A DNA stretch of 64,000 bases from Pecten maximus (Eukaryota): positions 21,328,001 through 21,392,000 of the forward strand of contig NC_047028.1 in the NCBI RefSeq assembly GCF_902652985.1, given 5' to 3'. The notes under the pieces were generated by a model. The model was not told the origin of the DNA, did no database searches, and was given only the letters and a program-made list of their open reading frames with translations. The translations under genes were made by a program, and so were the position numbers. Shown one piece after another: positions 1 to 43,564 of this stretch (positions within the stretch are counted from its first letter, which is position 1; each line of letters starts with the position of its first letter).

Positions 1-272
1 TGCAATGCTGGGAGTACAGAATTAAGCAAAAGTAATTGTCTTCAGAATAATAGAATAATTTCTCAAAAGTTTTGTTTTTCATTTTTACACTAATAAGCTA
101 AACAACACAGAGTAATTGTTATAGTGTTCAAACTGATGTTCGTTGAGAAATTTGAAAACCCAAATATTGAAATCAACAGCTGGTCACAATCTTTAATAAA
201 TCAATCAGAACTCTAATAATCAATCAGAATTCTAATGGAAATGATGAATTAAGGTTAAAATACTACACATAC

Positions 273-3200
273 CTGTCACAGCATCATCTTGGTATAAGTT
301 AAATTTAAGTTGTTCATAAACATCTGGAATAAACACAAAAATATATCAATCAGTTTCAGATTGATCTTTATAACATGCCTATCTTTTAGATTTAGTCTAA
401 TTATATAAATGAAAGTGATATATTTTTTTTTAATAGCATGAATTATGTAAAGAATTATTTTATTCACAATTTAAAATATTTTATTTTGTGAATGTCAAAA
501 GCTTCAACACAATTTGTATCAACAGACATTTGGATAGCATATTCATTGGACCATTTACCTTGTCTAGCGGTTCCCATAGCAGCCAGTCCAACACCTAAAC
601 ACCCTCCATGTCTAACCATCTATAAAACAGAAAGGTCACATACCGTAAAAAACTTAATACATCCAAGAGGAATAAGATTTTTATTTACGATTTTCAACAT
701 GAAGTGATGACTAAAAATAATGATATGAAAGTGAATTAAATTTTTTTTCAATTAACAATCTTTTCATTTTAATTAAAATTATTAATATTTTGTGAAAGAT
801 ATTCATATAATTGTAACTTACATCTGTCGATGCATCTTTTAACTGGTTTAATAAATAATCTGTAATCTCTCCTCCATGGTTCGCATGGATCAAACCTGAA
901 ACACAACAGGCATATACATATAAAGTAGGGTGATTATAAAAACCCAGGTCTAATGGCCTGAGACCTGTAGATTTGGTCTTATTTAAGTTTTATTTCTTGC
1001 CCTGAAAAGTAAATACTTCGCCAATCAAACAGAGCAACATACCTGATTTGACTGTTGAATTATGATTCTTAAAGGAAAAATCCTTAATATCCAAGAATGC
1101 CAGATTATGATCATTTTTTACAAAGCTAAATCATTTTCAATCCTACATATTCAATTCAAGAGTTGATGGAAAGACTGCAAAGTGAACTATTTTATAAAAA
1201 TCTTCAAAATATAATGATTACAAAACAGATCTATTAAATAATCAATATTAAGAGTAATAATTTTGTTTAGGCTTCCCATTGAAACTATAACAATAATGCT
1301 CAGATGAAATTCAACTTCAGGAGAATAGAACCAGCAAGAACAGCTGCCTGATATAAGGAAAAAATATCACAATCTTATCTTGTAAAATAGTCTTGCTATT
1401 CGTAATATTTTGCATATTTATCAACAAAAGAATAATAAAACTTTTCAGCATACCTTGCTTCTTTATTAATTGGATTTCTAATTTAATAATTCACATAAAA
1501 AGTTGTTTACCTAGAGCATATAAGCCGCCTCCTTCTGAGTAAGCTGATCCTGGGCCGGAATCTTTGGGTAAGTATGTTGACATTAAATTAAGTGCTTCTT
1601 TTTCATGACCCTGAAAAATACAAAACGTCAATTACAGCATCACCCATTTCTGTTACTTACATTGAATTAATGGTGATAAAACGATATAGGTTTCTCACAG
1701 TAATTCTGATTCACCGTTTTCAAATGATTACAATGTAAAAATAGTGTTTTAGTTACATTCTACAGAAATTTAACTCAAATTGGAAATGTACCGTAATTTC
1801 CTATGTATTGCCAGAGGACTATCTGATGACCAGTCAAATATGATGACTAACAATTACTAATACTTTGCAGTTTGAAGAAAAAAATTAGCATAAAACTTTG
1901 TTGTCAGCGTTTGTTCTCATTCACTTACCCTGTGTATCGTTCCTAAACTGGCAGTAGCTGAAAATTTGGCCCAATTTGTTGCTCTTGATAACCATTCCAA
2001 ATTATCTCTGTAACAGAACAATACTTGTGCAGCCTTTCACTTCGTAAGTTGTAACAGTAGTTTTTTATTCAAAGATACACATCATAGCCTATATGCAGAT
2101 GGCTATAGTTTTTAAATTACTCTGGAGCATTGTAATAACAAAAAGTAGCAATAAAGATTTTGGTTTGTTTATTGTATTGTTTAATGTCCTGTCTTTGTCA
2201 TTTCAGGATGGCCTCCCTTGTGTGAAAACTGTTGGCATGTTACAAGAGTGTGTCTTTGGAAGGCTGAGGTATGTTCATGCGTGTCGCCTTGTGAAGGTGT
2301 GGAACAGATTCGACTTTTGTGCTACCTCACTGAAGCATGCTGCAGAGGACACAGCAGGACACCTGACCTTGACACATTATACTGACAACAGGCGAACCAT
2401 TTGTCCTACACCGAAGCAACAAAGACACTAATCTATATTCATGTAACCGATATGTTTAGATGCTATTCTAAGTGTATAGCTGTTTTTCTTATCTCTAGGA
2501 AAGTTCTATCTGCGCTGTATAAGTTAAGACAGAATTTAAAGAAATGATATAATGTCTGATGGAGACTTATATTGATATATTTTCAACATTTAACGTTCTC
2601 ATTAAGTCACATGAGGACAGTGAACTGATCAAGCAGTTATCAAAAGCAACATATTCCTACTCTCCATTGTTTATCTTATACATGGGAAAGTTTCCATTTT
2701 CTGAACATAGCACATGGGAGGTAACTCACAATCTATAACATCATGTATACAGCTATATATTTCTCTAATTTCTTTAATTCCATAAATAGGTATAAATTTA
2801 TTTTTGTGTTTCACCACAATATTTTGCATTTAATAAATTAAGTTGATTAGTGGATCAGGGTAAATATCATCCTAACTTATATCTAAACACCATATTGATA
2901 TTCTTCCTTTTTATTATACCATTCAGGCATTTGTAAACAGTTTAGTCTTCACCTCAGATAAAGTGTATTAGGAAAAATTCCAATAATGTATCATTAAATC
3001 CAAAACATTTTTAAAAAGCTGTGTCAAGACATACACACACACAAAAATCACAAAAAAATGTCAAAATTCCTTTAAGATAACAAAACTACAATTACAAGCT
3101 GTTGGGGTAAAAATCTTAAATGTCGTGTAGATTCTCTAACGAAAACAATTGAAGAGGTACCTTTACTGATTATAAGAAATCTAATTCATATTTAACTCAA

Positions 3201-6200
3201 GTTTATTTTCACTTGCTTACCTGAGAAATTGATCACAAGTTGTTCCACAGTGCATGTATGAGTTAGCGATGACAGTAGCTGTATGACAAACGGAGTTACG
3301 TACGGCTTCCTGTAAAACACAATATTCTAATTCCTGTAAGGACTAACACGAATCAAACTGACCACTAACTTCTTATAAAACACAACATGACAATCTCATT
3401 CCAGTCAGGACTAATACAAATCAATCAGATGATTTACTTCTCATAAAATCCATTGTTTAAGAAATGAAGGGTCAATGAACATGTTTATTATGGCATTTTT
3501 TTTTTCAAATCTGCATCAGTAAATCTGATCACATCTCTCTGAATAACCTACACATTGTCTTCATTAATCAATAATATGTCAATTTTAATACTATGTCTCA
3601 TTAAAAAATTTGAAAAACAACTTGCCTTTTAACATCATGTTTATATTTCTTCTTAGTGACAAAACCATCACTCTAATGTATTGAGCGAGGTGCGCAAAGC
3701 TGTCATTTTGACTACCTGATCAAGAGTTTACTTAATATATATCCAGGCTTGATTGAATCTTGTTAAAAAAACAGTTACTGCATTATTGAAAAATAGCAGT
3801 GATATAACATGTCGATGGAATGTTAAGGTACAGGAAATAAAACTATTGTGCAGTAAGACAATATCCGAGTTGAAAATAAGGTCAATTTTGTCTCGCACAG
3901 AAAGATGACTCATACATTTAAGGTAAAGTAAAGTTTCAACATGACACCAAATGGAGTATATATACTTAACACTGACCTTTGTGTTTTTCAGTATGAGCAT
4001 ATCTGTCTTGTTGTTACGGATGAGGAACTGGAGATGCAGGTTGATAGTTACATCCCCTGACAATATATTTTTCAGCTTCATCATGTTGTCCTGTACTTTC
4101 ACATCAGCCTCACTCTGAAATGTCACATAAAAGCAACTTTTATTTATTAAAATGTACTCAATTTTTTTTCTCGCCTATTTCTAAGTAACAATATTTAAAA
4201 CATCTGAAGAACATATGGTTTTTATGGCAAACATTGAATTAAGACATATTGTCTGTATTAGCAAGAAAGTGCAAGAGAAACGGGAATGGCACGGGCAATA
4301 TACACGTGGGCCTGTAAACAGCTATACATGGTTAGGACTTATGAACACTACACATGGTAAAGGCCTGTAAACAGTATACATGGTAAGGGCCTGTAAACAG
4401 TTATACATGGTTAGGACTTATGAACACTATACATGGTAAGGGCCTGTAAACAGCTATACATGGTTAGGACTTATGAACACTATACATGGTATATGGGCCT
4501 GTAAACAGCTATACATGGTAAGGGCCTGTGTCCATACACTCACCTCTGGTTCGACCTTGCCAAGCTGTACCTCTCTGTTAAAAAAGAAAAGCGAAACTGA
4601 AGAAACAGACAAAAATCACTTATTCTCATTCCTTTCTGATTGATAATGATTTTTTTTTTAAATGTTTGGTTTCAAAAAGACTTCCTCATAATTTTCAATG
4701 CACATTTTAATGTTTTAGAAAAATAACATAAAACTAAACTGAAAGAAAAATTTATCTTTATTATTAATATCATTTGAAAATATTGATTCTTTTGCCAACA
4801 ATTAATTTATTCAATTTTAACAAATGATTGTAAAATGAGCTAAGTTTGGATTTTAATTGTGAAATGTTCCTGTCTAGCTTGAATGATTTCTATAAGTAAC
4901 AATTAGACATTGCATAACACTTATTAGTAAATGTTTCCTGGCAGAAATGACATAAATAAAAATAATTTTTTAAATACTATGACATATATACCCAGATTCT
5001 CCATCTTTCTCCTCCTCCTTAGCATCTGACACTGTGGTAACAATTCGTCCTTTCTCCGTCCCAGTTACTGAGGTGCGGAGTCCGTTGCCGACTCGCAGGA
5101 GGAACTGCTGAGTGGCACTGTCGTACAAATCAAAGGCGATCTGGTACGCCATCAGGATGTCATTCTGTGAAATAAGAAAAACATACAACTTATAAATCGG
5201 GACTTCATAATTTAATTTCAGACACAAACTGTTAATGCATTATCCATAGTATCTTAATTACCATATTTATTTCTCAACAAGCCAAGTGAACTAACGCAGA
5301 ACTTTCAATTTAGGGGGTGAACTTATTACAGCACAATGGAATCTTTGTTGGCACTTTTACTGAAAAGCAATAGCAGCCTTATTGCAGGATACATATGGTA
5401 CATTTGCATACTGTTAATAAATTCAAGAATTCTATGAGTATTTTAATTATATGACTTGTGAGGATGAATAGAATCTTTCCCTACCTTGAGGCTGTGACAG
5501 AGAAATCTTCCCGAGCGTTAAACAATCAAGAATATATACCAAGGGTTGGAGATTTCTATGTCACATCCTCAAGGTAAGGGACGACTAGTTTTCCTCCCAT
5601 CAGACAATTTTTTTCCGCAGAGTCCAGTTGTTCAATATTGTAAAAAATATTACAATGCAATACAATGTTCATGCTATGGAATTGTCGTCATGATGTCATT
5701 GTATTGTTGTTGTGATGTCATTGTATTGTTGCTGTGATGTCATTGTATTGCTGTTGTGATGTCATTGTATTGTTGCTGTGATGTCATTGTATTAGGTTGC
5801 ATGAATGTGCTATCTGTTATACCATGGGGGTGACAGAGAAATATTGAACAAGTAGAATGGGAGATAAATCTGTAAACGATAGGAGAAAGTGCTGAAATGA
5901 AATATGGAACAATTTGATTACAAAGAGGACCCCTAAAATTGAGAGTATGTAAGAGAGAACAAATCAAAAAGGCTTTCAACTCTAACCTTCAAATTTGTAT
6001 ATCTATCCTATTGAATTATATGAAAGAGGGTATGTTGAATGTTACCTCAGATCCTTGCATCAACTTTTCCAGGATCTCAGTCACTGACTGGGGATCGTCC
6101 AAGAAAATGTAGCACTGAAAAATAAATGGGTATTTTGATACATCGATTATATCACACCTATCTTATATGTAACAAAATTTGTAAAGTCAGTGTAATCCTG

Positions 6201-14651: not shown

Positions 14652-14938
14652 TATGGCGCGGGAAGGATGTCATAATTAAATATTTTAGCCTAGGCAAAAT
14701 TATTTTTGCCCAGGCAAAAATAATATTGACTAGGCAAAAATATTTCTGCCTAAGCAAAAATAATTTTGCCTAGGCAAAATTTTTTTTTGCCTAGGCAGAA
14801 ATAATTTTGCCGAGACATAAATCGAATATTGCCTAGGCTAAAATATTTTTGCCGAAGCAATATTCGAATTTTGCCTAGGCAGAAATCGAATTTTGCCTAG
14901 GCAATATTATTTAATTATGACATCCTTCGCGCGCCATA
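14652..14938. mobile_element. IS3EU-like non-autonomous DNA transposon with internal palindromic tandem array
   Basis: ~31-bp TIRs TATGGCGCG(G/C)GAAGGATGTCATAATTAAATA; exact 6-bp TSD tggttt (14646-14651 / 14939-14944); interior is ~21-24-bp units centred on TTTGCCTAGGCAAA. Confidence 0.8.
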
Positions 14939-15828: not shown

Positions 15829-18800
15829 ATGCATTGCCCTGGTCTAGTCCTCCTTCTCAACCTAGTGGTTCTTAGTTCGGCCGAGGAAAGTTGGTCCGGA
15901 ACGACAGGGACACATTCTCGATATTCCGGTGGGGAAAGTAAGGAATGGTAAGAGTAGGAAATGACCGCCGTGACAATACTATCAATAGTTGGACAAGTTG
16001 TGATCGATTATCTTGTGTGCCTTTTGTACAGTCCTTAATTGAAGTTGCAGATGGTAGACACTGCTACTGGGTTAAACTCCAAAGCTTTCCAGTTTTAATA
16101 GTGAGATACTATTCAGAATATACAAAACTATGCGACATTCTTCTGAGATTCCTAATTGAAAATTATAAAATTTATAGATTTCTTTTTAGTTTTTGTTTAC
16201 GTCCCAATCATTATTATGGAATTGCTAGCGGACTTAAATCATCAAGGCTTGCCAATTTGAATAGTGAGACAAGGTTCAGAATTTACGCATGTACTTGACA
16301 TTCTTTTGAGGTTCAATATAGAAAGTCATGAAAATTATTGATTTATCCGATAATTGCACGCTCCATCAAAATTTTAACGTTAGTTTCGATCTGTTTTGAG
16401 CTTCCACAGTCGTGGTCTAAGCACCAACACTTTCCGTACCCAATATCAGTGGCGACTCCTATATAAAGACGAAACAGCTCATCATATTTTGTGTTGAAAT
16501 TACACATATTGTGTGTGTCTTTTGTAAAATCCTTTGTTTTCCAGCAGTTGAGAGTTATCTTTAAACAGGGGGATGCTCCATTTTCTCTGAGAAATGTCTG
16601 CTGTCATCTTGTTGCTCATTTCGAACTTGTATTACAACATTGTACACCTTATGACAATCCAGGTTAGAAATGTTTCAAATAAACATAATTATACATCTAT
16701 CAAATGTATTGAAGAAATGATGGAAGTAATTTCTTGGCAAGGTCAATATGGCAATGACCCTGATTTAATTAAATATAATATCAAGAATAGTTGATTTGGT
16801 GTTATTTAATGTCTCATCAACACCAACAGCCATTCAAAGACTTTGTCGAACAACATACATAGCATTTTTTGTTCATTTTTAATGTTATTTAAAATCGAAA
16901 ATTTGTTTCAGCCGTTTTGGACTTTCCGAACTTTCCTTGAATTCCTAGATACATAACGTTTGTATGATGTAGTTTACTGTGTAGTTGTACACGTGGAGTA
17001 TAGATGCTTTCACCATGTGTGACTAAATGCAAAACCGTTAATGCTGATTACCTCTCGCGGTATAGCCGAGCGACCGTCACGCTCTACCATCATTTCATAA
17101 TGAGTTTTTCCACCATTAGCGATACTCACGACGGTGATATTCAACAGTATGAACCCCATGAACAATCGTATACACCACAGTATACCGAACTTGTGTCCGT
17201 AAATTCCCTCGATCTAACAGAATGGGAAAATGGTCAGATTCCATTGACGTTTTACGATATGAACGAAACAATGAGTGACAGTTTACGGGATGTAAGTCTC
17301 GCGTCACAAAGTGAAGAGTGTAATGAAACCACGTCACAAACGATTGAAACGTCATCTTACCTCACTGAAATAGAAAAAATGAAAGATACTCCTAAAGACG
17401 TCATGATAGACCATATACGGAATATCACACGCGATAGTGTTCCTGATCTTGAGGCTCTACGTTATAAACTGTTTACAATTGCAGTTATTAGAGACGATTT
17501 CCCTAAGAAAGATGGTTACCTAAGGAAACGTCGCGTAGCCCGTAGTACCGGGGCAGCACCCGCATGTAAAAAGCTTGCGAAAGATTGTTTTGTTCTGACC
17601 CGCGCGTGCGAGGGTGAATACACAGAAGACCTGTGTGAAGTGGTGCCGTCCAAAAGCAGAAAAGCGCTTAGCACTGTCAGCAACAAAGCACAGAATACGG
17701 AACAATCCGATGTTGGTGGTATTGTATCTTTAAAAGAAACTGTTATCATCCTACAAAGAGAAATTCACGAAATGAAGTGTGAGTACAATAAAGTCGTGAA
17801 CAACCTCGAACAGAAAATTGACAAGTTATATAAAGAAAAGGACACAGCACAGAAAAGAAGGGAAAAAACACAAACAGAAACGCGACAACAGCTAAAACAA
17901 GTAACAGACAATAAGCATGAAAACAAAGCCCTACTTGAAACTGTGACGAGCTCCAAAGAGAACAAACAGCAAACAAGGCGGAAATTGAGGCTCTGAAACT
18001 AGAAAATAAAAAAATCAGAAACGAACTTAATGAAATTAATGTAATTTACCAAGATTCATGTAAGAAAATTGAAGATGTCGAGAAGCAGGTAGTCACCGTG
18101 AAAAAGGACATGAAACAGATTGTTGAATCCGCTTCAGACTTCAAAAATATGGCGAGTCGGTACGACAATGACCAGTTAAACGGCGTCGCAAGTACTAAAA
18201 AGTCGCTCAAACTATTATCGGAACGCGTTGGTAACTACATCAAATGCTACGATTCCGACATGACCAAAACTCAAGATTCAATACAAACATGTGCATCTTC
18301 TGTAGAAGGGATAAAAAAACAACTAGACAAGTTGAGGAAAAAAGTTGATAAGAGCGAGTCTCAAGGTTCATGTTAATCAAAGTCTACTATTGATGATCGA
18401 GCAAAGCATACTGTAGAAACATACAACAGATTCAGTGTGCTAGACGCAGACACAGTTCCTCAGTCGAGAGGTATACAACGACATGACCCCGAAACACAAA
18501 CGAACGCACCCCTCAGCCACAGGTGCGTGGATATACCAGAGACTCACACGAATGCGCCTATCCATTCGAACTCCGCAACAACGTCAGGCGCGAGTCCACC
18601 CAGTAGTACAGGAGTAGAAAACAACGACAGTAAGGTTTGTGGAGAGAAAGCCAGAGAAAGGGAAAGTCGATCGTACTCCACGGTTGCATCAAGTGCTATC
18701 CCTGTACATTTTCCCACTTCGGCTTGTCGAAGTAACACATCCGCTCCCCGTTGTGAAAAATCTGATTTTGTAAAAGAACAGTCAAGCTTGGCAGACCGAT

Positions 18801-21800
18801 TTGTTGGATACAAGGCTGTGTCGAGACAAAAAATATGCCGGTTCTATATACATGGTATTAACAAGAGAATAGCGTCAGAATCAGCGATGAGGGATTTTCT
18901 TCATAAATCAGGTGTGCGCGTGACGCATATAAAGTATTTTCAGAACAGTTGGAAATCCACAGCCTCCGCCCAACTAAATATACAATCAGAGGACGTCGGA
19001 ATCATATCGGCTGGTGGCTTCTGGCCTAGTGGAATCGGTATGAGAGAATGGGTTCCGAGACAAGTCTTTTACAACCAAATCAATGATGGTTGACTCAATT
19101 AACATGATGTGTTGGAACATAGAGGGCGTTATGGCCGGCTCTCCATATTTACTGGAATGTTTAGAAAAATATCATATAGATATTTGTGGTCTTTCAGAAC
19201 ACTGGGTGAGAGAATATAATTTATCTTTCTTCGACATGTTTAAACAGTATGGTTATACAGCTATAGTTAAACCGGTTCATGAAATTGACCCTTTCCGGTA
19301 TAAATGTAACGTTAGAGGTGGTGTGGTAATTCTTTGTAAATCTAACAATTTTATTTTTTCGGAAATAGAGGTTGAAAGTTCAAGGATAGTTGGTGTGGAG
19401 ATTCAAACTCCCAATAAGGAATATTTGTACTGTTTCGCAGTTTATATGCCAGCCTCATCAAGACCAATTGATGTTTTTATTGAGCATGTTGAAATTCTAG
19501 AGTCACTAGTTACAGTTTACTCAAAAAAGGGTAGGTTTTTTATAATTGGTGATCTGAATGTTAAAATCAGAGGGCACAGAAGTAATTTTGAAAAAAATGA
19601 AAGGTCAAGTGTATTCCAATCTTTTTTAGATAGAACTAATTTGTATTCTGCTAACGTTCAGTTAAATTGTAAAGGACCAGTGTACACCTTTTATCCTCAA
19701 ACAGGACACTGTACTACCATTAATCATATCTTAATTCAGTCAAACGTTTTTGACTTGATAAATTACTGTGAAGTACTAGACGATGATCTTCATAATTTAT
19801 CGGAACATCACCCTGTCATATGTTCCATATCCATACCAGTTTCTGCCCCTCATTCTGCGGGATCTGCATATGTAAAATATAATTGGAAAAAGGCAAAAAC
19901 AATCAATGCCTTGAAATGTTATACAATATGTCTAGATGATAATTTAAGTTCAGTGATTATACCTGAAGGTATTATATCGAATAACGACATTGACGGATAT
20001 TATTCTAACATAGTATTGTCAGTCAAGAAAGCTGCTGACTTAACATTACCTAAAAGTGAATACAAAAGTTATCTTAAACCGTATTGGAACGACGAAGTAT
20101 CACAAATGCATAAGGTAATGACTAATAAAAGGAAACGTTGGATCTTAGAAGGTAGGCCAAGATCCGGAAGCGTCAGTTTTTTGGAGTATAAACAAAACAA
20201 AGCTATTTTTCGCAGAAATTTACGTACTGCCTTTCATACTTATATGTCAAATCAGTTTTCTGAAATTGATAAGTGTGGTGAGATAGACCAAACATTGTTT
20301 TGGCAATTGTATAAACGTAAAGTTAATAAACGACCCCAATCACAAACTGAATTAAGGTACAATGGTAAAACCTTACGTGAGCCTGCTGACATTGTAGAGG
20401 CATGGGCGTTACATTTTGGTACGATATTTCAAGATAAATCGGATGAATGTTTTGAAACAGGCTTTGAAAATGATATTAACACGCATATTGACAATATTGA
20501 GTCCAATGTTAAGTTTGAACAGGATAATTTCCTGAATGACGTCATTACGTCAGTAGAGATATCGACGTCATGCAAGAAACTCAGCACAAATAAAGCTGGA
20601 GGGCATGATGGTTTAGTTTATGAGCATTTTAAGTACGGAAGTAATAAACTATTCGAACATATGGCTGCGTTGTTCAATATGATAATAAAAAATGAATACA
20701 TCCCAAAACAGTGGAAAAAGGGATTAATTGTTACGTTGCACAAAGGTCAAGGGAAAGTAAAAGATGATCCCAATAATTATAGAGGCATCACCCTACTGCC
20801 AGTCATGTTTAAGTTATTTGAAATGTCTATATCAAATAGAATCAGCCCAGTCATATGTTCTGATACGTTTCCCAATAAGCAGCAGTCTGCATACCAAAGT
20901 AATCTGTGTAGCCTATGCACATCTTTTAACTTACAAGAATGTATTAATTATAATTTAGAAAATGGATCAAATGTATATGTTGCATTTTTAGACAGCAACA
21001 AGGCGTTCGACACAGTGTGGCACGCAGGTCTTCTTTTTAAAATACATGAAATTGGACTGAGAGGCAAGATATGGGTTATTCTTAAAGAAATGTATACACA
21101 TGTAGAAAGTTCAATCTTATTTAATGGCTTAACATCACCTTTGATCAAAATGGAGAGAGGGATTTTGCAAGGGGGATCTTTGTCTGCCAAACTGTACCTT
21201 ATTTTCATAAACGAATTATTGAATGAAATGGAAAATTGTGGAAACGGCGCAGTTATTGCAGATTTAAAAGTTAACATCCCAACTCAGGCAGATGACATTT
21301 GTCTTGTTAGTACAAATTTTCAAAGCCTACAAAAAATGGTTAATATATGTGAAACCTATAGTAAGAAGTGGAGATTCACTTTCTCATCTACGAAAAGTAA
21401 AATTGTATTGTTTTCTGAAAAACGCATATCCCATAATATACAAAATGTCTACCTATACAAATTTGTACTGCCTGTAGTTGAAGAAATTAAACATGTCGGA
21501 ATATTGTTAAACGGCAGAAGAAATTCAGTTGAAAGAACTACTAGAGCATGTTGTAAATTAAAAACTGGTGTTATGTCTCTTCTAAAATCTGGGGCTCATC
21601 CCAACGCACTTAACCCTCTCACTGTTGCTAAAATAGTCAAAATTAAAGTGTATCCTTCTGCACTTTTCGGATGTGAACTATGGTTACTCTCCAAAACTGA
21701 AGTATTATTATTAGAAAAGGCACAAAATTTTATTGTGAAAAGTATTCAAAGGTTTGAAAAGAGAACTAGGACAGACATGTGTGTATCATTGCTTGGCTGG

Positions 21801-24800
21801 ACTAGTATTGAATCTTATATTAATATCAAGAAATTATTATTTCTGGGACGAATTTATAATATCGATAATAGTATGCTAGTACACAAGATATTTATTACTA
21901 GATTTTTTATGTTCATTGTAAACAACGAAAAACAACAGGGATTTATACCCGACATTATTTCTATTTTAAGAAAATATTCATTGTATGAGACTTTTGTTGA
22001 CTATATAAAGCTAGGGTATTTTCCGGGGAAACTACAATGGAAAAAAAGTGTCTATGAAAATGTATATAGAGTAGAGGAAACTGCATGGTTAGAACGTATG
22101 CATAACCACAATGACTTTTTCAGATTTAAATTTATTCATTCTAAGATTAAACCACATTATTTATGGAAATTGGCTATTAAATATCCTCAGTATTATAAAT
22201 CTATACACTGTATCATAAAATTATGTACAACATCTCGTATGTTGGACCATATGGCTTTATGCCACTACTGTGGTATTTTATACAACGATACTTTAATGCA
22301 TATAATTCTACATTGTGAAAAGAATACTGCTATTCGTGATAAATTATGGTGTTTTTTATTTAATATGTTGGGTATTGATTTTATTGCGTACCTTCACAAT
22401 TTATCAGATTTTGAACTAGTTAATGCTTTATTAGGAAGCAAGTTAGACTATGACATGTCTAACGAAGACAACGAATATGTAAGATTAGCAAATGTAAATT
22501 TTCTGAATGAAATGCTTAAAAATATAACCCAATTTGCTAACAATTGATGTTTCAATATAATTACTTGTGTGTGAAATAACTTTGTATATGTATATTCAGA
22601 CTATTCTTGTTTATATGTTGATTGTATGATGTAATTATTCTATTTGTGAATCTTCATTTGTGGAGGAAATAAAGAGAATAATAATCAAGGCTTGCCAATT
22701 TGAATAGTGAGACAAGGTTCAGAATTTACGCATGTACTTGACATTCTTTTGAGGTTCAATATAGAAAGTCATGAAAATTATTGATTTATCCGATAATTGC
22801 ACGCTCCATCAAAATTTTAACGTTAGTTTCGATCTGTTTTGAGCTTCCACAGTCGTGGTCTAAGCACCAACACTTTCCGTACCCAATATCAGTGGCGACT
22901 CCTATATAAAGACGAAACAGCTCATCATATTTTGTGTTGAAATTACACATATTGTGTGTGTCTTTTGTAAAATCCTTTGTTTTCCAGCAGTTGAGAGTTA
23001 TCTTTAAACAGGGGGATGCTCCATTTTCTCTGAGAAATGTCTGCTGTCATCTTGTTGCTCATTTCGAACTTGTATTACAACATTGTACACCTTATGACAA
23101 TCCAGGTTAGAAATGTTTCAAATAAACATAATTATACATCTATCAAATGTATTGAAGAAATGATGGAAGTAATTTCTTGGCAAGGTCAATATGGCAATGA
23201 CCCTGATTTAATTAAATATAATATCAAGAATAGTTGATTTGGTGTTATTTAATGTCTCATCGACACCAACAGCCATTCAAAGACTTTGTCGAACAACATA
23301 CATAGCATTTTTTGTTCATTTTTAATGTTATTTAAAATCGAAAATTTGTTTCAGCCGTTTTGGACTTTCCGAACTTTCCTTGAATTCCTAGATACATAAC
23401 GTTTGTATGATGTAGTTTACTGTGTAGTTGTACACGTGGAGTATAGATGCTTTCACCATGTGTGACTAAATGCAAAACCGTTAATGCTGATTACCTCTCT
23501 TCGTCCATTTTATACCAATAAATACCCGTACACCATCAAATCTTCCAAAAGTTATCACACAAATTTCTTTTAAATATATTCTCATCAGCTGACGAATCAT
23601 AGAAAAATGAGATAGCTTTATGATGCAATTTAATTCATTTGAAGGCGCCTCTCTAACTCAGTATGTATCATAATATGTTAATATATCGTGTCTTTTGTAC
23701 AATACTGAACAGAGCAGTTCTGTTGAGACAAAATGTAATGTTAAACGTTCGTTTGTAGGATGCCGTCAGACGAGGAACCATTGAGACTCCTGGTGGAATC
23801 TTTGCTTGAGCGGATGGAAAGACAAGAGAAGAAACTACAGCGGATGGAGAAGACTATTCAAGAGAACACAGAAGATCTGAAGCGGAAAGACATCCGGGTA
23901 AATAATCTGGAACGAGAGCTTGACGAAATGAAAACGCTATACCGAGCGCAAGTTACAGAGGACAAACATCGGCAGTACGATGTTCCAAAGCAGGACAACA
24001 AATCCGATTTGCCGCAAGAGAAACACAATAGTACCGATGACATTACAACCAGTCAGAAACCACAGGACAAAGTCATGAGGCCTGGTAGGTAACGTGACTG
24101 CATGCTTGAATGATCGACTATGTCAAAAGATGGTAATTTTTACCCGCTGTTCGTCCGTCCTTATGTACATATGTATGTAATTTCAATTTTGCATTTGTAG
24201 AGCTATTCCTCATTTATGATATTTCAGTATTGTAGCGACTTTGTATTGTAAACTACTAAATGTGTTGACGAATGGCTACTGAAAAGATTTAGCGATAATT
24301 AAGATTTCCATTTATAAAGTAAGTTTACGATGATTTTTTATCACGATTTCAGTGATTAACAACACACGATTTCGAGAGATGTAGTCTGATGACAACCACG
24401 AGAAAAGATTTGATCGACATCATAATCTCATTTGAAAATATTCCTTGCGAGTCAGACGTGCTCATTGTTTGTTCCATCGTAGATCTTTTGTATGGCGCTT
24501 ACCCTTCCGGGACACTCTGTCTTATTCTCCTTTTTCATTTTCAATAGGCTTTATGTAAATCTAGATTTTTTTTCTCATGTCTTGCCCTCGTTTTATGGTG
24601 TTGGAGTTATGGTTTAATCATTATGTCGTACTCTCTGTCGTTTTTGCCACTTGAGACCAATGTAAATGATCATACAAATGTGTTTCATGTAATATGTTGA
24701 GAATAATGAGTGACAATGGCCCATTCGTGTTTTTTTTCCATTTCAGTAAGGGTACCGTCCGAGGAAGCAGTTGGTGCCTTCAGCGTTTCCTTGAGTAGGA

Positions 24801-25159
24801 GTATGGATTTACACGCGAATTTCGTGTTGACTTATGACGAAGTCAACTTAGACAAGGGAGGTAACTATAATAAAGTAGACGGGGTGTACACAGCCCCTAT
24901 CAGTGGGGTGTACGTATTCACTTGGACTTCTACGGGAACCACCACGGATGACGTGTTTACAGAACTGGTTGTTGACGGATCATCGCGAGGCACAATATTG
25001 GCCGACGGGGACCAGTATCATTGGGATAGTGCCACCGGGTTGATCGTGACGCCAGTCGCTGCCGGGGACCATGTTTTTATCAGATCTAAACGCGGGGGTC
25101 ACCTGTATAGCGAAGATTATTACGGCAAGGTTACTTTCTCTGGATGGCGACTATCTTAG
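15829..25159 (+). CDS. Secreted C1q-domain-containing protein A (signal peptide + coiled coil + gC1q), 285 aa
   Basis: Exons 15829-15947 (MHCPGLVLLLNLVVLSSA signal, phase 2), 23759-24084 (heptad-rich LRLLVESLLERMERQEKKL..., phase 1), 24747-25159 (gC1q: GAFS...LTYDEV..D.GGNY...GVYTAPISGVYVFTW...GDHVFI...TFSGWRL). Total 858 nt, in frame. Confidence 0.9.
16241..17056 (+). repeat. 816-bp direct repeat, copy 1 (left of LINE)
   Basis: atcaaggcttgcc...gattacctctc; matches 22684-23499, with one mismatch seen by eye (A16819 / G23262). Confidence 0.97.
17100..19093 (+). pseudogene. LINE ORF1 (coiled coil + NRFxxL motif + RRM-like domain with FWP motif), disrupted
   Basis: The three track ORFs join into one: frameshift near 17960 (next frame ANKAEIEALKLENKKIRNEL... 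runs into the 18098 ORF) and an in-frame TAA at 18374-18376 followed by YNRFSVL and C-terminal RFYIHGI...FWPSGIGMREW. Confidence 0.8.
19083..22547 (+). CDS. LINE ORF2: apurinic-like endonuclease + reverse transcriptase + C-terminal CCHC knuckle, 1154 aa
   Basis: EN motifs WNIEG, LSEHW, GGV, VYMP, GDLN; RT motifs KAGGHDG, NYRGITLL, FLD..KAFDTV, QGGSLS, QADD, HVGI; CHYC-x8-H-x4-C. Confidence 0.96.
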   Translation: MMVDSINMMCWNIEGVMAGSPYLLECLEKYHIDICGLSEHWVREYNLSFFDMFKQYGYTAIVKPVHEIDPFRYKCNVRGGVVILCKSNNFIFSEIEVESSRIVGVEIQTPNKEYLYCFAVYMPASSRPIDVFIEHVEILESLVTVYSKKGRFFIIGDLNVKIRGHRSNFEKNERSSVFQSFLDRTNLYSANVQLNCKGPVYTFYPQTGHCTTINHILIQSNVFDLINYCEVLDDDLHNLSEHHPVICSISIPVSAPHSAGSAYVKYNWKKAKTINALKCYTICLDDNLSSVIIPEGIISNNDIDGYYSNIVLSVKKAADLTLPKSEYKSYLKPYWNDEVSQMHKVMTNKRKRWILEGRPRSGSVSFLEYKQNKAIFRRNLRTAFHTYMSNQFSEIDKCGEIDQTLFWQLYKRKVNKRPQSQTELRYNGKTLREPADIVEAWALHFGTIFQDKSDECFETGFENDINTHIDNIESNVKFEQDNFLNDVITSVEISTSCKKLSTNKAGGHDGLVYEHFKYGSNKLFEHMAALFNMIIKNEYIPKQWKKGLIVTLHKGQGKVKDDPNNYRGITLLPVMFKLFEMSISNRISPVICSDTFPNKQQSAYQSNLCSLCTSFNLQECINYNLENGSNVYVAFLDSNKAFDTVWHAGLLFKIHEIGLRGKIWVILKEMYTHVESSILFNGLTSPLIKMERGILQGGSLSAKLYLIFINELLNEMENCGNGAVIADLKVNIPTQADDICLVSTNFQSLQKMVNICETYSKKWRFTFSSTKSKIVLFSEKRISHNIQNVYLYKFVLPVVEEIKHVGILLNGRRNSVERTTRACCKLKTGVMSLLKSGAHPNALNPLTVAKIVKIKVYPSALFGCELWLLSKTEVLLLEKAQNFIVKSIQRFEKRTRTDMCVSLLGWTSIESYINIKKLLFLGRIYNIDNSMLVHKIFITRFFMFIVNNEKQQGFIPDIISILRKYSLYETFVDYIKLGYFPGKLQWKKSVYENVYRVEETAWLERMHNHNDFFRFKFIHSKIKPHYLWKLAIKYPQYYKSIHCIIKLCTTSRMLDHMALCHYCGILYNDTLMHIILHCEKNTAIRDKLWCFLFNMLGIDFIAYLHNLSDFELVNALLGSKLDYDMSNEDNEYVRLANVNFLNEMLKNITQFANN
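22684..23499 (+). repeat. 816-bp direct repeat, copy 2 (right of LINE)
   Basis: Starts immediately after the LINE tail; offset from copy 1 is 6443 bp at both ends. Confidence 0.97.
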
Positions 25160-27369: not shown

Positions 27370-29593
27370 ATGTATTGGTTGTTTTTCGTCCTCGTCATGG
27401 GATCAATGATCCAGGTTAAGGCGGCGGAACGTTCAGTTGGAGAAATATCCGATGTCAGAAACGATGACCGGTGAGTAGCCTCCCTTTCGGGTTCTTTTTT
27501 ATTTTCCTTTCTGGATATGTATACTCTTGGCCCCTAGTATCACTGACGAGCCCAGGACGGAACAGCTGTATGATAATCCTATCATCACTGATGAGTGCTA
27601 GAAAGACGGCAGCGGTACGATGTGGCTAGCAACACTGGTGAGTCTTAGAAGGACGAATAGATGTATGATGTGCCTAGTGTCACTGATGAGTCATAGAAAG
27701 AAGAAAAGACTGTATAGTCACTGGCATGTTCTAGAAGGACGAAGCATCTATATGGTACAGTTTCAAGTCATGTTGGCTATTCTGTATCTTAAATTTACTT
27801 TGAAGGGTACAATCCTTTGACGAAGAATTACGCTTTGTCGATATTCTTCTCTGATGTTTTTAACCCCACCTTGTAGCATTACACTGGAAACAAGAAACAT
27901 TTATTTTATTTCGATATGTTTTTATTGAAATAAAAATATTATTGAAAACTTGATCTGCTTAGTAGAAAACTTCTCTGTGAATTGGAGACATGGAGTTTAT
28001 TGTCATTAGTATCTGTGCTACAAATAATACTAAATATTCGTTGCAGGACAGTGTTAACAGAGAAGTCACTGAGAAGGCTGGTTGAATCTTTGTTGGAAAG
28101 AGTGGAAAGCCAGGATGGCAAAATAGAGTCGCTCGAACAGATGGTCAAGGATAACAAAGATGATCTACAGCGCAAAGATATCCGAATTAGCCTGCTGGAA
28201 CGAGAACTGAAATTGATATCAAAGCAATCCCAGAATTTAACAAACAATCAGGACTATGTCTTCAGATCATGCTTCCAAACCTAATTGGCCTCAAAAGGAA
28301 ACCTTGAGAAGGACCAATGTAGCCACTTCTGGCCAGAAATTAGTTGAAGACGGGGAAGATTATCATACTTCAAGGATAGGTACGTTTGACGGAATCATTT
28401 TCATCTTAGCTATCTTTAGCAAAATTGAGACATCGACACATAGACTATAAACTTTATCAATTTTGCAAAAACAATTGCATTTAGTTATATGATTTATACT
28501 AATCATTCATGATTGACTCGGATTGAAGGGCGTGCTTATTCTTAATGTGGAGGGAGACCAGAGAACCTGGAACTCAAGTAACCTCCAAACCTTTTTGCGA
28601 ACTTTCGAGGAATCAAACCTCTGGCGAATAGGTTAAGGCGATATGGAGCGCCAACCGACCAACCATTAGTTTAACACTAATATTAAAAAAAGATGATTTT
28701 CTTATCCTTTGATGTTGCAGTTGTTAGACAAGGCTGGAGGACGTTTCAGTCCTCGAGGTGTACTGTAATCTGTTTATCGCGTTTAATTCATTTGTACTTA
28801 ACTTTTTTTTAATACAATATTGCAAATTACGAACTTTAGGGTACATTGTACTTCTCTAAGTTTCTTTTTTTTTTTTTTTACCTATTTCGACTTTTTTTGT
28901 CGCCTGTTTTGATCAACTGTTTAATTCCTTAGTATCACTAGCGAGTCATACAGGTATCAGGACGAAACTGCTGTTACTGCATCTAAAAGGTGCTAATATT
29001 TTGTTTGCCTTTTGTATTATTTGGCATTAGAGCTAGCAATAAATTTATATAATATCTGCTTATTCCTTATTTTTGCACCTCAGATCCTTATTTGCTTTGA
29101 TATCTAATACCTTGTGTACATTATCCAACATCAGTATCCACAACTGTTAAATTAACACGTGATCGTTCTCCTTGCAGCCCGCGTGACACCTAATGGAGCA
29201 GGAGCGTTTAGCGTTTCCTTGAGTGCCAGAGATATGACGTTACATTCCAAATTGGTGATAGTATTTGATGAAGTACTATTGGACATTGACGGAAACTACC
29301 ACACAGGAGACGGTGTGTATAGAGTTCCGGTTTCCGGGGTATACGTATTTACCTGGTGTATGACAGGGACCACCACAGACAACGTCGTGACAGAACTTAC
29401 CGTAAACGGGTCGCCACGGGGCACCATATTCTCTGATGCGGAAACAGGGCACACGTGGGATACTTCCACCGGTGTGATCGTGACGTCAGTCATTGAGGGA
29501 GATCACGTGTTTATCCGATCAAAGTCCGAAGGAATGATACACAGTAGTGGTATATATGGTAAAGCTATGTTTTCCGGATGGCGTCTAACTTAG
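27370..29593 (+). pseudogene. Secreted C1q-domain-containing protein B, paralogue of A, +1 frameshift in exon 2
   Basis: Exons 27370-27470 (MYWLFFVLVMGSMIQVKA signal, phase 2), 28047-28379 (LRRLVESLLERVE...), 29178-29593 (intact gC1q). Sum 850 nt = 3n+1; the entry frame stops at 28282-28284 while the +1 frame carries the linker homologous to gene A and reaches the phase-1 donor. Confidence 0.8.
27535..27755 (+). ncRNA. Degenerate tandem array of five minimal type I hammerhead ribozyme motifs
   Basis: 38-48-nt units (cores at 27543, 27588, 27635, 27683, 27721); consensus atca-CTGATGA-gtcc-tagaa-ggac-GAA-acagctgt-A-tgat. Confidence 0.65.
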
Positions 29594-39064: not shown

Positions 39065-39118
39065 AGATCGGATATGGTTTGAAATCGTAAACAAGACTGA
39101 GAGAGGAAGTTTTAAAAT

Positions 39119-42100
39119 GCAAGGCCTCATAAAGGACGGTGTTAAGTCCTAAACGGCTTCAGATAGGACAATGTAAAGTCGTAAAGGGCTTCAGATAGGA
39201 CGGTGTAAAGTCGTAAAAAGCCTCATAAAGGACAGTGTTAAGTCGTAAAGGGCTTCAGATAGGACGGTGTAAAGCCACACAAGGCTTCAGATAGGACGGT
39301 GTAAAGCCATACAAGGCCTCAGATAGGACGGTGTAAAGTCGAAAAATAGCCTCAGATAGGACGGTGTGAAGCCACACAAGGCCTCGGATAGGACGGTGTA
39401 AAGCCATACAAGGCCTCAGATAGGACGGTGTAAAGCAATACAAGGCCTCAGATAGGACGGTGTAAAACCCTACAACGCCTCAGATAGGACGATGTAAAGC
39501 CGTACAAGGCCTCAGATAGGACGATGTAAAGCAATACGAGGCCTCAGATAGGACGGTGTAAACCCCTACAACGCCTCAGATAGGACGATGTAAAGCCCTA
39601 AAAGGCCTCAGATAGGACGGTGTAAAGCAATACGAGGCCTCAGATAGGACGGTGTAAAGCAATACAAGGCCTCAGATAGGGCGGTGTAAAGCCCTACAAC
39701 GCCTCAGATAGGACGATGTAAAGCTCTAAAAGGCCTCAGATAGGACGGTGTAAAGCCATACAAGGCCTCAGATAAGACGGTGTGAAGCCATACAAGGCCT
39801 CAAATAGGACGGTGTAAAGCCGTACAAGGCCTCAGATAGGACGGAGTAAAGTCATACAAGGCCTCAGGTAGGACGGCGTAAAGCCATACAAGGCCTCAGA
39901 TAGGACGGTGTTAAGCCATACACGGCCTCAGATAGGACGGTGTAAAGCCATACATGGCCTCAGATAGGACGGTGTAAAGCCGTACAAGGCCTCAGATAGG
40001 ACGTTGTAAAGCCATACAAGGCCTCAGGTAGGACAGTGTAAAGCCAAACAAGGCATCAGATAGGACGGAGTAAAGTCATACAAGGCCTCAGGTAGGACGG
40101 CGTAAAGCCATACAAGGCCTCAGATAGGACGGTGTTAAGCCATACACGGCCTCAGATAGGACGGTGTAAAGCCATACATGGCCTCAGATAGGACGGTGTA
40201 AAGCCATACAAGGCCTCAGATAGGATAGTGTAAAGTCATACAAGGCCTCAGATAGGACGGTGTAAAGCCGTACAAGGTCTCAGATAGGATGGTGAAAATT
40301 CGTACAAGGCCTCGGATAGGACGGTGTAAAGCCATACAAGGCCTCAGATAGGACGGTGTAAAGCCGTACAAGGCCTCAGATAGGACGGTGTAAAGTCATA
40401 CAAGGCCTCAGATAGGACGGTGTAAAGCCATACAAGGCCTCAGATAGGACGGTGTAAAGCAATACAAGGCCTCAGATAGGACGGTGTAAAACCCTACAAC
40501 GCCTCAGATAGGACGATGTAAAGCCGTACAAGGCATCAGATAGGACGGAATAAAGTCATACAAGGCCTCAGGTAGGACGGCGTAAAGCCATACAAGGCCT
40601 CAGATAGGACGGTGTTAAGCCATACACGGCCTCAGATAGGACGGTGTAAAGCCATACATGGCCTCAGATAGGACGGTGTAAAGCCGTACAAGGCCTCAGA
40701 TAGGACGTTGTAAAGCCATACAAGGCCTCAGGTAGGACAGTGTAAAGCCAAACAAGGCATCAGATAGGACGGAGTAAAGTCATACAAGGCCTCAGGTAGG
40801 ACGGCGTAAAGCCATACAAGGCCTCAGATAGGACGGTGTTAAGCCATACACGGCCTCAGATAGGACGGTGTAAAGCCATACATGGCCTCAGATAGGACGG
40901 TGTAAAGCCATACAAGGCCTCAGATAGGACGGTGTAAAGCCATACAAGGCCTCAGATAGGACGGTGTAAAGCCGTACAAGGTCTCAGATAGGATGGTGAA
41001 AATTCGTACAAGGCCTCGGATAGGACGGTGTAAAGTCATACAAGGCCTCAGATAGGACGGTGTAAAGCCGTACAAGGCCTCAGATAGGACGGTGTAAAGC
41101 CATACAAGGCCTCAGATAGGACGGTGTAAAGCCATACAAGGCCTCAGATAGGACGGTGTAAAGCAATACAAGGCCTCAGATAGGACGGTGTAAAACCCTA
41201 CAACGCCTCAGATAGGACGATGTAAAGCCGTACAAGGCATCAGATAGGACGGAATAAAGTCATACAAGGCCTCAGGTAGGACGGCGTTAAGCCATACAAG
41301 GCCTCAGATAGGACGGTGTTAAGCCATACACGGCCTCAGATAGGACGGTGTAAAGCCATACATGGCCTCAGATAGGACGGTGTAAAGCCGTACAAGGCCT
41401 CAGATAGGACGTTGTAAAGCCATACAAGGCCTCAGGTAGGACAGTGTAAAGCCAAACAAGGCATCAGATAGGACGGAGTAAAGTCATACAAGGCCTCAGG
41501 TAGGACGGCGTAAAGCCATACAAGGCCTCAGATAGGACGGTGTTAAGCCATACACGGCCTCAGATAGGACGGTGTAAAGCCATACATGGCCTCAGATAGG
41601 ACGGTGTAAAGCCATACAAGGCCTCAGATAGGATAGTGTAAAGTCATACAAGGCCTCAGATAGGACGGTGTAAAGCCGTACAAGGTCTCAGATAGGATGG
41701 TGAAAATTCGTACAAGGCCTCGGATAGGACGGTGTAAAGTCATACAAGGCCTCAGATAGGACGGTGTAAAGCCGTACAAGGCCTCAGATAGGACGGTGTA
41801 AAGTCATACAAGGCCTCAGATAGGACGGTGTAAAGCCATACAAGGCCTCAGATAGGACGGTGTTAAGCAATACAAGGCCTCAGATAGGACGGTGTAAAAC
41901 CCTACAACGCCTCAGATAGGACGATGTAAAGCCGTACAAGGCCTCAGATAGGACGGTGTAAACCCCTACAACGCCTCAGATAGGACGATGTAAAGCCCTA
42001 AAAGGCCTCAGATAGGACGGTGTAAAGCAATACGAGGCCTCAGATAGGACGGTGTAAAGCAATACAAGGCCTCAGATAGGGCGGTGTAAAGCCCTACAAC

Positions 42101-43255
42101 GCCTCAGATAGGACGATGTAAAGCTCTAAAAGGCCTCAGATAGGACGGTGTAAAGCCATACAAGGCCTCAGATAAGACGGTGTAAAGCCGTACAAGGCCT
42201 CAGATAGGACGGTGTAAAGCCATACAAGGCCTCAGATAGGACGGTGTAAAGCCGTACAAGGCCTCAGATAGGACGTTGTAAAGCCATACAAGGCCTCAGG
42301 TAGGACAGTGTAAAGCCAAACAAGGCATCAGATAGGACGGAGTAAAGTCATACAAGGCCTCAGGTAGGACGGCGTAAAGCCATACAAGGCCTCAGATAGG
42401 ACGGTGTTAAGCCATACACGGCCTCAGCTAGGACGGTGTAAAGCCATACATGGCCTCAGATAGGACGGTGTAAAGCCATACAAGGCCTCAGATAGGATAG
42501 TGTAAAGTCATACAAGGCCTCAGATAGGACGGTGTAAAGCCGTACAAGGTCTCAGATAGGATGGTGAAAATTCGTACAAGGCCTCGGATAGGACGGTGTA
42601 AAGTCATACAAGGCCTCAGAAAGGACGGTGTAAAGCCATACAAGGCCTCAGATAGGGCGGTGTAAAGCCCTACAACGCCTCAGATAGGACGGTGTAAAGC
42701 CGTACAAGGCCTCAGATAGGACGGTGTAAAGTCATACAAGGCCTCAGATAGGACGGTGTAAAGCCATACAAGGCATCAGATAGGACGGTGTAAAGCCATA
42801 CAAGGCCTCAGATAGGACGGTGTAAAGCCATACACGGCCTCAGATAGGACGGTGTAAAGCCATACATGGCCTCAGATAGGACGGTGTAAAGCCATACAAG
42901 GCCTCAGATAGGATAGTGTAAAGTCATACAAGGCCTCAGATAGGACGGTGTAAAGCCATACATGGCCTCAGATAGGACGGTGTAAAGCCATACATGGCCT
43001 CAGATAGGACGGTGTAAAGCCATACAAGGCCTCAGATAGGATAGTGTAAAGTCATAAAAGGCCTCAGATAGGACGGTGTAAAGCCGTACAAGGTCTCAGA
43101 TAGGATGGTGTAAAGCCGTACAAGGCCTCAGATAGGACGGTGTAAAGTTATGCAAGGCCTCAAAAAGGACGGTTTGAAGTAGTACAAGGCCTCAGAAAGG
43201 ACGGTTAAAAGTCGTACAGTGTCTCAGATAGAACAATGTAAAGTGGTACAAGACA
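39119..43255. repeat. 32-bp satellite, ~129 monomers, with higher-order structure
   Basis: Monomer caaggcctcagataggacggtgtaaagccata; homogeneous core with diverged edges. Confidence 0.98.
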
Positions 43256-43564
43256 TTTTCCCAGTTTCATAAATCTATATTCATTCATTAACTTAAGAGT
43301 GCCATATGAAAACGTTACATAATTAACGGAATTTTCCTGTTCTAAGGTTTTCCGTTAAATCCACTAATACTGTCCTATGGAAAATCTTAGTTAACTAATT
43401 TCCTTGGAGTTGTGAATGTTAGTGAGACTATAGGGTGTATGTGTGTGGTCTTACCAAGTCTGTTCATGATTAATATCATTACTATCTCTCTCATATCATA
43501 TCATTATCAGAATCAGAGCGGAAGTGATCTCTTAACAATATATAGATACGTATGACCTACACAT

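Follow-up and report, generated by a model that had tools for sequence, protein, structure and literature searches.

The stretch of Pecten maximus DNA considered here, which we call the window, comprises 64,000 nt of contig NC_047028.1 (assembly GCF_902652985.1, forward-strand positions 21,328,001 to 21,392,000), and the positions given below follow its own numbering. It carries a long interspersed nuclear element (LINE), a retrotransposon lacking long terminal repeats (non-LTR), with two open reading frames (ORFs), of which ORF2 has apurinic/apyrimidinic-type endonuclease (APE) and reverse transcriptase (RT) domains, set between two 816-bp direct repeats (Table 1). An earlier note, made from the letters alone, had described two such copies flanking the element with no intervening bases and with one difference between them, and our base-by-base comparison agrees: the copies lie at an offset of 6443, their single mismatch is A at 16819 versus G at 23262, and the LINE segment abuts both with zero bases between. 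The same pair was recovered by a repeat search and by self-BLAST of the window, which gave 99.76% identity over 820 bp rather than 816 because AAT at 16237-16239 also matches the element tail. At its 3' end the element reads ...GGAGGAAATAAAGAG(AAT)n, with AATAAA at 22668, and repeat copy 2 follows directly; the AT shared by the tail and the start of the repeat, which the note had also pointed out, is a genuine overlap. The whole repeat-LINE-repeat structure occupies 7.26 kb.

Table 1. Features at and beside the LINE insertion, in window numbering.
Feature	Position	Strand	Remarks
816-bp repeat of host DNA, copy 1, very probably a target-site duplication	16241..17056	.	same as 22684-23499 except 16819; locus-specific in the genome
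5'-truncated LINE copy (~261 bp missing) that carries APE and RT domains	17057..22683	+	AATAAA at 22668 and (AAT)n tail; at least 330 genomic candidates
ORF1 remnant, frameshifted	17100..19093	+	664 aa in intact copies, central coiled coil, no Pfam domain
ORF2, 1154 aa, APE, RT and C-terminal CX2CX12HX4C	19083..22547	+	Pfam and motif reading
816-bp repeat, copy 2, very probably a target-site duplication	22684..23499	.	begins with AT, which could pair with an (AAU)n RNA tail
Neighbouring host gene: coiled-coil ORF 23760-24092, C1q-domain ORF 24710-25159	23760..25159	+	ORF listing; Pfam C1q E = 2.9e-17

The 816-bp repeat is host DNA and lies outside the element. Across the genome, only the two copies at the window locus match the unit over its full length, and it was absent beside every other LINE copy that we examined. 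Its remaining matches, at 68-86% identity over ~50-160 bp, fall within unit positions 8-193 and mark an old dispersed repeat fragment (window ~16255-16400), not the sites near 16565 and 16795-16840 where the earlier note had placed decayed repeat fragments. The note had also named a test: a repeat confined to one locus would indicate a target-site duplication (TSD), whereas the same repeat beside other copies would indicate a terminal repeat encoded by the element. The BLAST search of the genome found it at one locus only, the outcome that indicates a TSD.

With the LINE segment of 5,627 bp as query, a search of the genome (3,983 contigs, 918,306,378 bases) gave at least 330 candidate copies, 99.1-99.8% identical where aligned, of which 40 were scored and 30 copies examined for flank duplications. 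Positions 1-5627 are covered at 99.1-99.8% by nine of the 40 scored copies. Nearly all the others form a ladder of 5' truncations, with starts from 1 to 4979 and a shared 3' end at 5627, the two exceptions being the 5' parts of copies that a later insertion has interrupted. A ladder with a shared 3' end characterises a young non-LTR retrotransposon, and the family combines this common 3' end and variable 5' truncation with a tail and with TSDs at 16 loci. Eight other copies that look complete extend ~261 bp further 5', ending ...(CA)AGATGGCGTCAACCGA, and the true full length is therefore ~5.89 kb, a length with which a collapsed 5,872-nt contig in run X1 agrees. The 5' terminus of the full-length copies (L022-L029) reads ...AAGATGGCGTCAACCGA. 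Between 0 and 13 variable bases, differing by copy, precede this terminus; ACACTTT is common to two copies (L025 and L029), for which transcription could have started slightly upstream, in the flank. The string AAGATGGCG at the LINE 5' end resembles a YY1-type box like that at the 5' end of human L1.

Intact copies (L022, L023, L024 and L026) have a 664-aa ORF1 that overlaps the 1154-aa ORF2 by 11 bp. ORF1 has a central coiled coil, and searches of Pfam and the PDB returned no domain in it beyond coiled-coil noise. The window copy, which had been taken for a complete 5.6-kb element, is 5'-truncated, and its ORF1, which starts at the ATG at 17100 (an ORF listed from 17004 includes read-through from the flank), is frameshifted by a 1-bp deletion after 17945. 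With this frameshift and the 261-bp 5' truncation, the window copy is dead.

In Pfam, residues 10-189 of the ORF2 product match Exo_endo_phos (E = 8.5e-6 for the N-terminal part) and residues 560-787 match RVT_1 (E = 1e-25). In the PDB, its top matches were L1 ORF2p and R2 reverse transcriptases; the endonuclease part had no match there. ORF2 stops ~75 residues past the CX2CX12HX4C motif, the last 355 residues showed no Pfam domain, and ORF2 gave no sign of a restriction-like endonuclease or a ribonuclease H (RNase H). In an exact-protein lookup, neither the window ORF2 nor its relative P0011 had a record. Within the endonuclease, G>A at 19722 (IDHI to INHI) is private to the window copy, whereas SEH in place of SDH (ORF2 residues ~240-245, window 19800-19815) is family-wide and is found also in the closest database relatives; among the proteins compared (P0001-P0016), a sister group (P0004, P0005, P0008, P0009 and P0010) has S-R-H and more distant relatives have the canonical S-D-H. 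As tentative leads on its clade, the paired ORFs, the microsatellite tail, the KPYWN motif that follows the endonuclease and the lack of RNase H may point towards the CR1/L2/Jockey-like side.

The earlier note had left conditional whether the long duplication at the window is general for the family, and the sampled insertions show that it recurs. For each of the 30 copies, 1.5 kb upstream was compared with 1.5 kb downstream by BLAST and the junctions were read; direct repeats were counted where they abut both the tail and the 5' end. Fifteen independent insertions carry locus-specific duplications of 99 to ~1,186 bp, and one more carries 17 bp (Table 2). Fourteen of the loci beyond the window were found by this flank-versus-flank comparison and one more (255 bp) across a nested insertion, and the sequence of the duplicated segment differs at every locus. 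The median of the resolved TSDs is ~270-350 bp. Over the 14 pairs of unique sequence, the two copies differ at 10 of 5,487 bp (0.18%), so these insertions are very recent. Fifteen pairs were read base by base; in 13 of them the duplication starts with AT, usually with C or TC before it, and the 5' junctions show microhomology of 0-4 bp.

Table 2. Flank duplications resolved among the LINE copies examined.
Copy	Flank duplication	Remarks
L021 (window)	816 bp	
L022	717 bp	
L025	540 bp	
L026	103 bp	
L028	897 bp	
L031	224 bp	
L033	99 bp	
L035	414 bp	
L036	203 bp	
L038	163 bp	
L040	17 bp	
L041	622 bp	
L042	about 1,186 bp	
L045	749 bp	
L050	290 bp	
L046 + L034	255 bp	one copy split by a nested 16.7-kb element with terminal inverted repeats (TIRs); 5' flank of L046 versus 3' flank of L034

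Several sampled loci merit separate description. The 16.7-kb insertion that splits one copy (G000:C3:52510784-52527506) has TIRs TATGGAAACGT.../...ACGTTTCCATA and is flanked by the duplicated 6-bp sequence TTATAC, and we take it for a probable DNA transposon. Two fragments on contig C90 (L047/L048, G000:C90:15722-17190 and 18597-20064) are truncated alike at 4159, with 1,406 bp of satellite-rich flank between them. Here a unit of LINE plus flank is tandemly repeated, an array that fits unequal recombination between long flank duplications. At L029, a perfect repeat of the 3' flank (100% identity) lies 3.4 kb past the 5' end, with a third copy 84 kb away (G000:C10:41731165-41731664, 41740991-41741490 and 41815101-41815555) and further paralogues at 86-91%. 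A 3.9-kb TSD at this locus was considered and not accepted: a reciprocal search did not confirm it, and the 5' flank is mostly another multicopy element that is not duplicated. The repeats at L029 could have arisen by segmental duplication of the region, or they could be a long TSD into which another element has inserted.

Empty alleles, those that lack the element, were examined at two loci. We placed contigs of four public runs on L035:600-5700, where the 414-bp segment and its flanks are unique in the genome. A contig from run X4 joins the two flanks with the segment present once between them, skipping 3,666 bp, that is, 3,252 bp of LINE and 414 bp of TSD. Contigs from X1, possibly the source sample (3,583 nt), and from X5 (1,764 nt) make the same join and skip 3,662 bp; a 4-bp indel inside the duplicated segment (L035:1322 and 4985) explains the two values, and the empty allele in X1 and X5 differs from the filled one. 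At L035 there is thus an allele that lacks the LINE and has the segment only once, which shows that the duplication arose with the insertion, the opposite of the empty alleles with two copies that, according to the earlier note, would place the duplication before the insertion. If X1 is the source animal, that animal is heterozygous at L035. At L045, the filled allele with its 749-bp TSD sits on a small contig (C3854), and chromosome C6 has the left flank and one copy of the segment with no LINE match listed. The right flank on C6 is repetitive, so its join is unconfirmed, and we regard C6 as a probable empty allele.

The behaviour is also seen beyond the family. A search with the ORF2 protein returned relatives at 21-55% identity, including a Pecten maximus protein at 32%. 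One relative (L051, 33% ORF2 identity), found on an ENA contig of 1.37 Mb, measures 5.9 kb and has an (ATCT)n tail; direct repeats of 1,162/1,163 bp, 99.7% identical, abut both its ends. A second (L053, 27% ORF2 identity), from a different ENA assembly, measures 8 kb, its tail is (TA)n and its flanks share a perfect duplication of 338 bp (100% identity), and its 5' end (L053:1799-1830), ...ACAAGATGGCGTCAACCGA, matches the terminus of the Pecten maximus family. A variant SDH motif in the endonuclease was considered as a cause of the long TSDs and rejected, as they occur with SEH (the family), SRH (L051) and canonical SDH (L053).

Other observations on these relatives concern their ends and coding content. 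The 3'-terminal GGAGGA(A/T)AATAAA(GA) before the tail is kept between the family (22655-22683) and relatives at ~34% ORF2 identity (L052:9975-10009 and L056:12110-12148), and the tail repeat itself varies among the family and its relatives: (AAT)n, (ATCT)n or (TA)n. L053 has an extra 830-aa ORF upstream of ORF1 and ORF2 (L053:1768-4260) that matches nothing in Pfam.

Taken with the duplications across the family and the empty allele, the geometry at the window locus makes it very probable that the 816-bp repeats are a genuine TSD, produced by the insertion of a 5'-truncated copy of a young LINE that was active until recently. Among other explanations, an assembly artefact, in which a heterozygous insertion or a collapsed repeat caused the 816-bp segment to be written twice, has the most in its favour: the LINE is a near-identical multicopy repeat, one or more other family insertions appear to be heterozygous in the source animal, and the read-level evidence covers L035 and not the window locus. 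Such an error would nevertheless need to create a false join of the (AAT)n tail to the start of the segment, and it would need to recur with a different segment at each of more than 15 independent loci as well as in two assemblies of other samples. The nested TIR element has an ordinary 6-bp duplication in the same assembly, so the assembly does not inflate TSDs generally, and we consider an artefact highly unlikely.

Two further explanations keep both copies as real and separate the duplication from the insertion in time. In the first, the LINE landed at the unit boundary of a tandem 816-bp duplication that was already there; tandem duplications are common in the genome, but nothing specific speaks for this order. 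The element ends coincide exactly with the unit boundaries at the window locus and at 15 other loci, the copies differ at 1 of 816 positions, as for a recent event, and one unit is present in the L035 empty allele and in the C6 allele of L045, which leaves a pre-existing tandem scarcely credible. Duplication after insertion, by unequal recombination or by flank copying during repair, draws some support from the identical LINE fragments 1,406 bp apart on C90, which show that recombination acts on such structures; yet a later event would not repeatedly set the segment flush with both the tail and a variable 5' truncation point, and the left edge of the duplication coincides with the AT of the nick site. 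We find this order of events hardly tenable. That the repeats are LTR-like terminal repeats belonging to the element, or the ends of tandemly inserted copies, is a negligible prospect and the LTR-like class was rejected: the unit does contain TATATAAA and AATAAA strings, but it does not accompany any other family copy, and the full-length copies share another 5' terminus and the same 3' terminus while each has its own flank repeat.

The TSD reading extends from the window locus to the family and, with less confidence, to its relatives. A young, APE-only LINE family makes TSDs of 0.1-1.2 kb as a matter of routine, and the wider clade probably does so too. We lean, by a little, towards the stronger proposal of a clade of APE-only animal LINEs, with this young mollusc family as one that is still active, in which the break in the second strand routinely falls several hundred to over 1,000 bp away from the first nick. 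Several points weigh against these conclusions. Six sampled copies (L029, L030, L037, L043, L044 and L049) had no resolvable duplication; at L030 the 3' flank is single-copy in the genome, so there is no long duplication there, and the L044 flank is another multicopy element and uninformative. About seven copies lie in satellites (L023, L024, L027, L032, L039 and L047/L048), where flank similarity is uninformative, and the sample is limited to the 40 candidates scored and 30 examined out of at least 330. The empty-allele evidence comes from the sister loci L035 and L045, with none at read level for the window. Among the relatives, four older ones with broken ORFs (L052, L054, L055 and L056) showed no flank repeat, and long TSDs are therefore frequent rather than obligatory; recombination may delete elements that lie between long direct repeats, which would leave old copies without such repeats. 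Finally, both the position and the agent of the second-strand break are inferred.

Usual LINE TSDs are 5-20 bp long, and lengths such as those of this family are very rare. How the second strand is cut and integration completed is a long-standing open question for LINEs, and TSD length is the footprint of that step. The junctions show an endonuclease site that reads ...C|AT... on the top strand, and the RNA, which ends in (AAU)n, can pair with the AT at this nick, as expected for target-primed reverse transcription. In the window copy the 5' end is joined 816 bp further along, and the host DNA between the two points lies on both sides of the element. In the scheme that we favour, the left edge of TSD copy 1 marks the first (bottom-strand) nick and the right edge the second (top-strand) break. 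Across the family, the top-strand break that primes second-strand synthesis would lie 0.1-1.2 kb 3' of the first nick, versus the usual ~5-20 bp, and the two long 3' overhangs would afterwards be filled in. The second break might be made by the element endonuclease acting at a distance, or it might be a discontinuity of host origin, for example at a replication fork. Duplications greatly outnumber the copies without a resolvable one, and long target deletions, which would look different, were not seen among the resolved copies; this suggests a directional process rather than random breaks.

The earlier note had placed the insertion in an intron of ~1.37 kb, about 60% of it duplicated, a setting for which we found no support; the sequence shows that copy 2 of the repeat ends 260 bp upstream of the first ATG of the coiled-coil ORF, with the C1q-domain ORF downstream of it. 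This gene (23760-25159, with its C1q domain at 24710-25156) and 27982-28284 look like tandem paralogous C1q-domain protein genes, and their N-terminal coiled-coil ORFs share LVESLLER...LERELxxxK. Elsewhere in the window, a satellite array of ~4.2 kb (39082-43256) has a ~32-bp period with copies 80-89% alike, and a structure resembling a miniature inverted-repeat transposable element (14652-14938) consists of 50-nt inverted repeats, 92% complementary, around seven copies of a 20-bp unit (GCCTAGGCAAAAATAATTTT-like).

If this reading is correct, each insertion of the family also duplicates a host segment of 0.1-1.2 kb, possibly longer, and brings with it a built-in substrate for precise deletion; homologous recombination between long direct repeats of this kind could remove the element cleanly or multiply it. 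Host promoters, exons or introns are duplicated by such insertions; in the window the segment lies just upstream of a C1q-domain gene. Standard pipelines will mis-annotate them as LTR elements or segmental duplications. We envision the family as a tractable natural system in which to examine the second half of LINE integration.

The closest precedent is Dualen-4b_cRei of Chlamydomonas reinhardtii, new insertions of which carry host duplications with a median of ~900 bp that were read as TSDs (Lopez-Cortegano et al. 2023, PMC9977147). Those authors called the duplications considerably longer than any reported earlier, the previous record being the 126 bp of rotifer R9 (PMC9977147). Our literature search found Dualen-4b as the only kilobase-scale precedent for LINE TSDs and otherwise occasional long TSDs of human L1 and unrelated elements, although descriptions outside its reach are possible. 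Like Dualen-4b, the Pecten maximus LINE makes insertions flanked by host duplications of up to kilobase scale. Dualen has both an APE and a restriction-like endonuclease, and its long TSDs were tentatively credited to the two endonucleases (PMC9977147), whereas the Pecten maximus element has an APE only, its ORF2 ending ~75 residues past the CCHC-like motif, and differs further in its animal host, two ORFs and microsatellite tail. Membership in Dualen/RandI was considered and rejected, given that the last 355 residues hold no Pfam domain and that ~75 residues after the motif were judged too short for a restriction-like endonuclease. Kilobase TSDs made with APE alone argue against a need for dual endonucleases.

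Two other comparisons place the family among better-known elements. R9 of bdelloid rotifers, a non-LTR retrotransposon, has a 126-bp TSD fixed for the family (Gladyshev and Arkhipova 2009, as cited in PMC9977147) and is described as a site-specific ribosomal DNA element with a restriction-like endonuclease. Like R9, the Pecten maximus family makes TSDs far beyond the norm; unlike R9, it occupies dispersed sites, with TSDs of 17 to ~1,200 bp. PMC4245944 gives TSD length as specific to the LINE species, L1 having 15 bp and ZfL2-1 having 5 bp. With human L1 and zebrafish ZfL2-1 the family shares an APE and an RT in ORF2, 5' truncation, 5'-junction microhomology, priming on a target complementary to the tail and a TSD length particular to the LINE species, and it departs from them in a median TSD of ~270-350 bp. 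A young, polymorphic and multicopy family whose TSDs are 10 to 100 times the norm with APE alone offers a natural contrast to L1 and L2.

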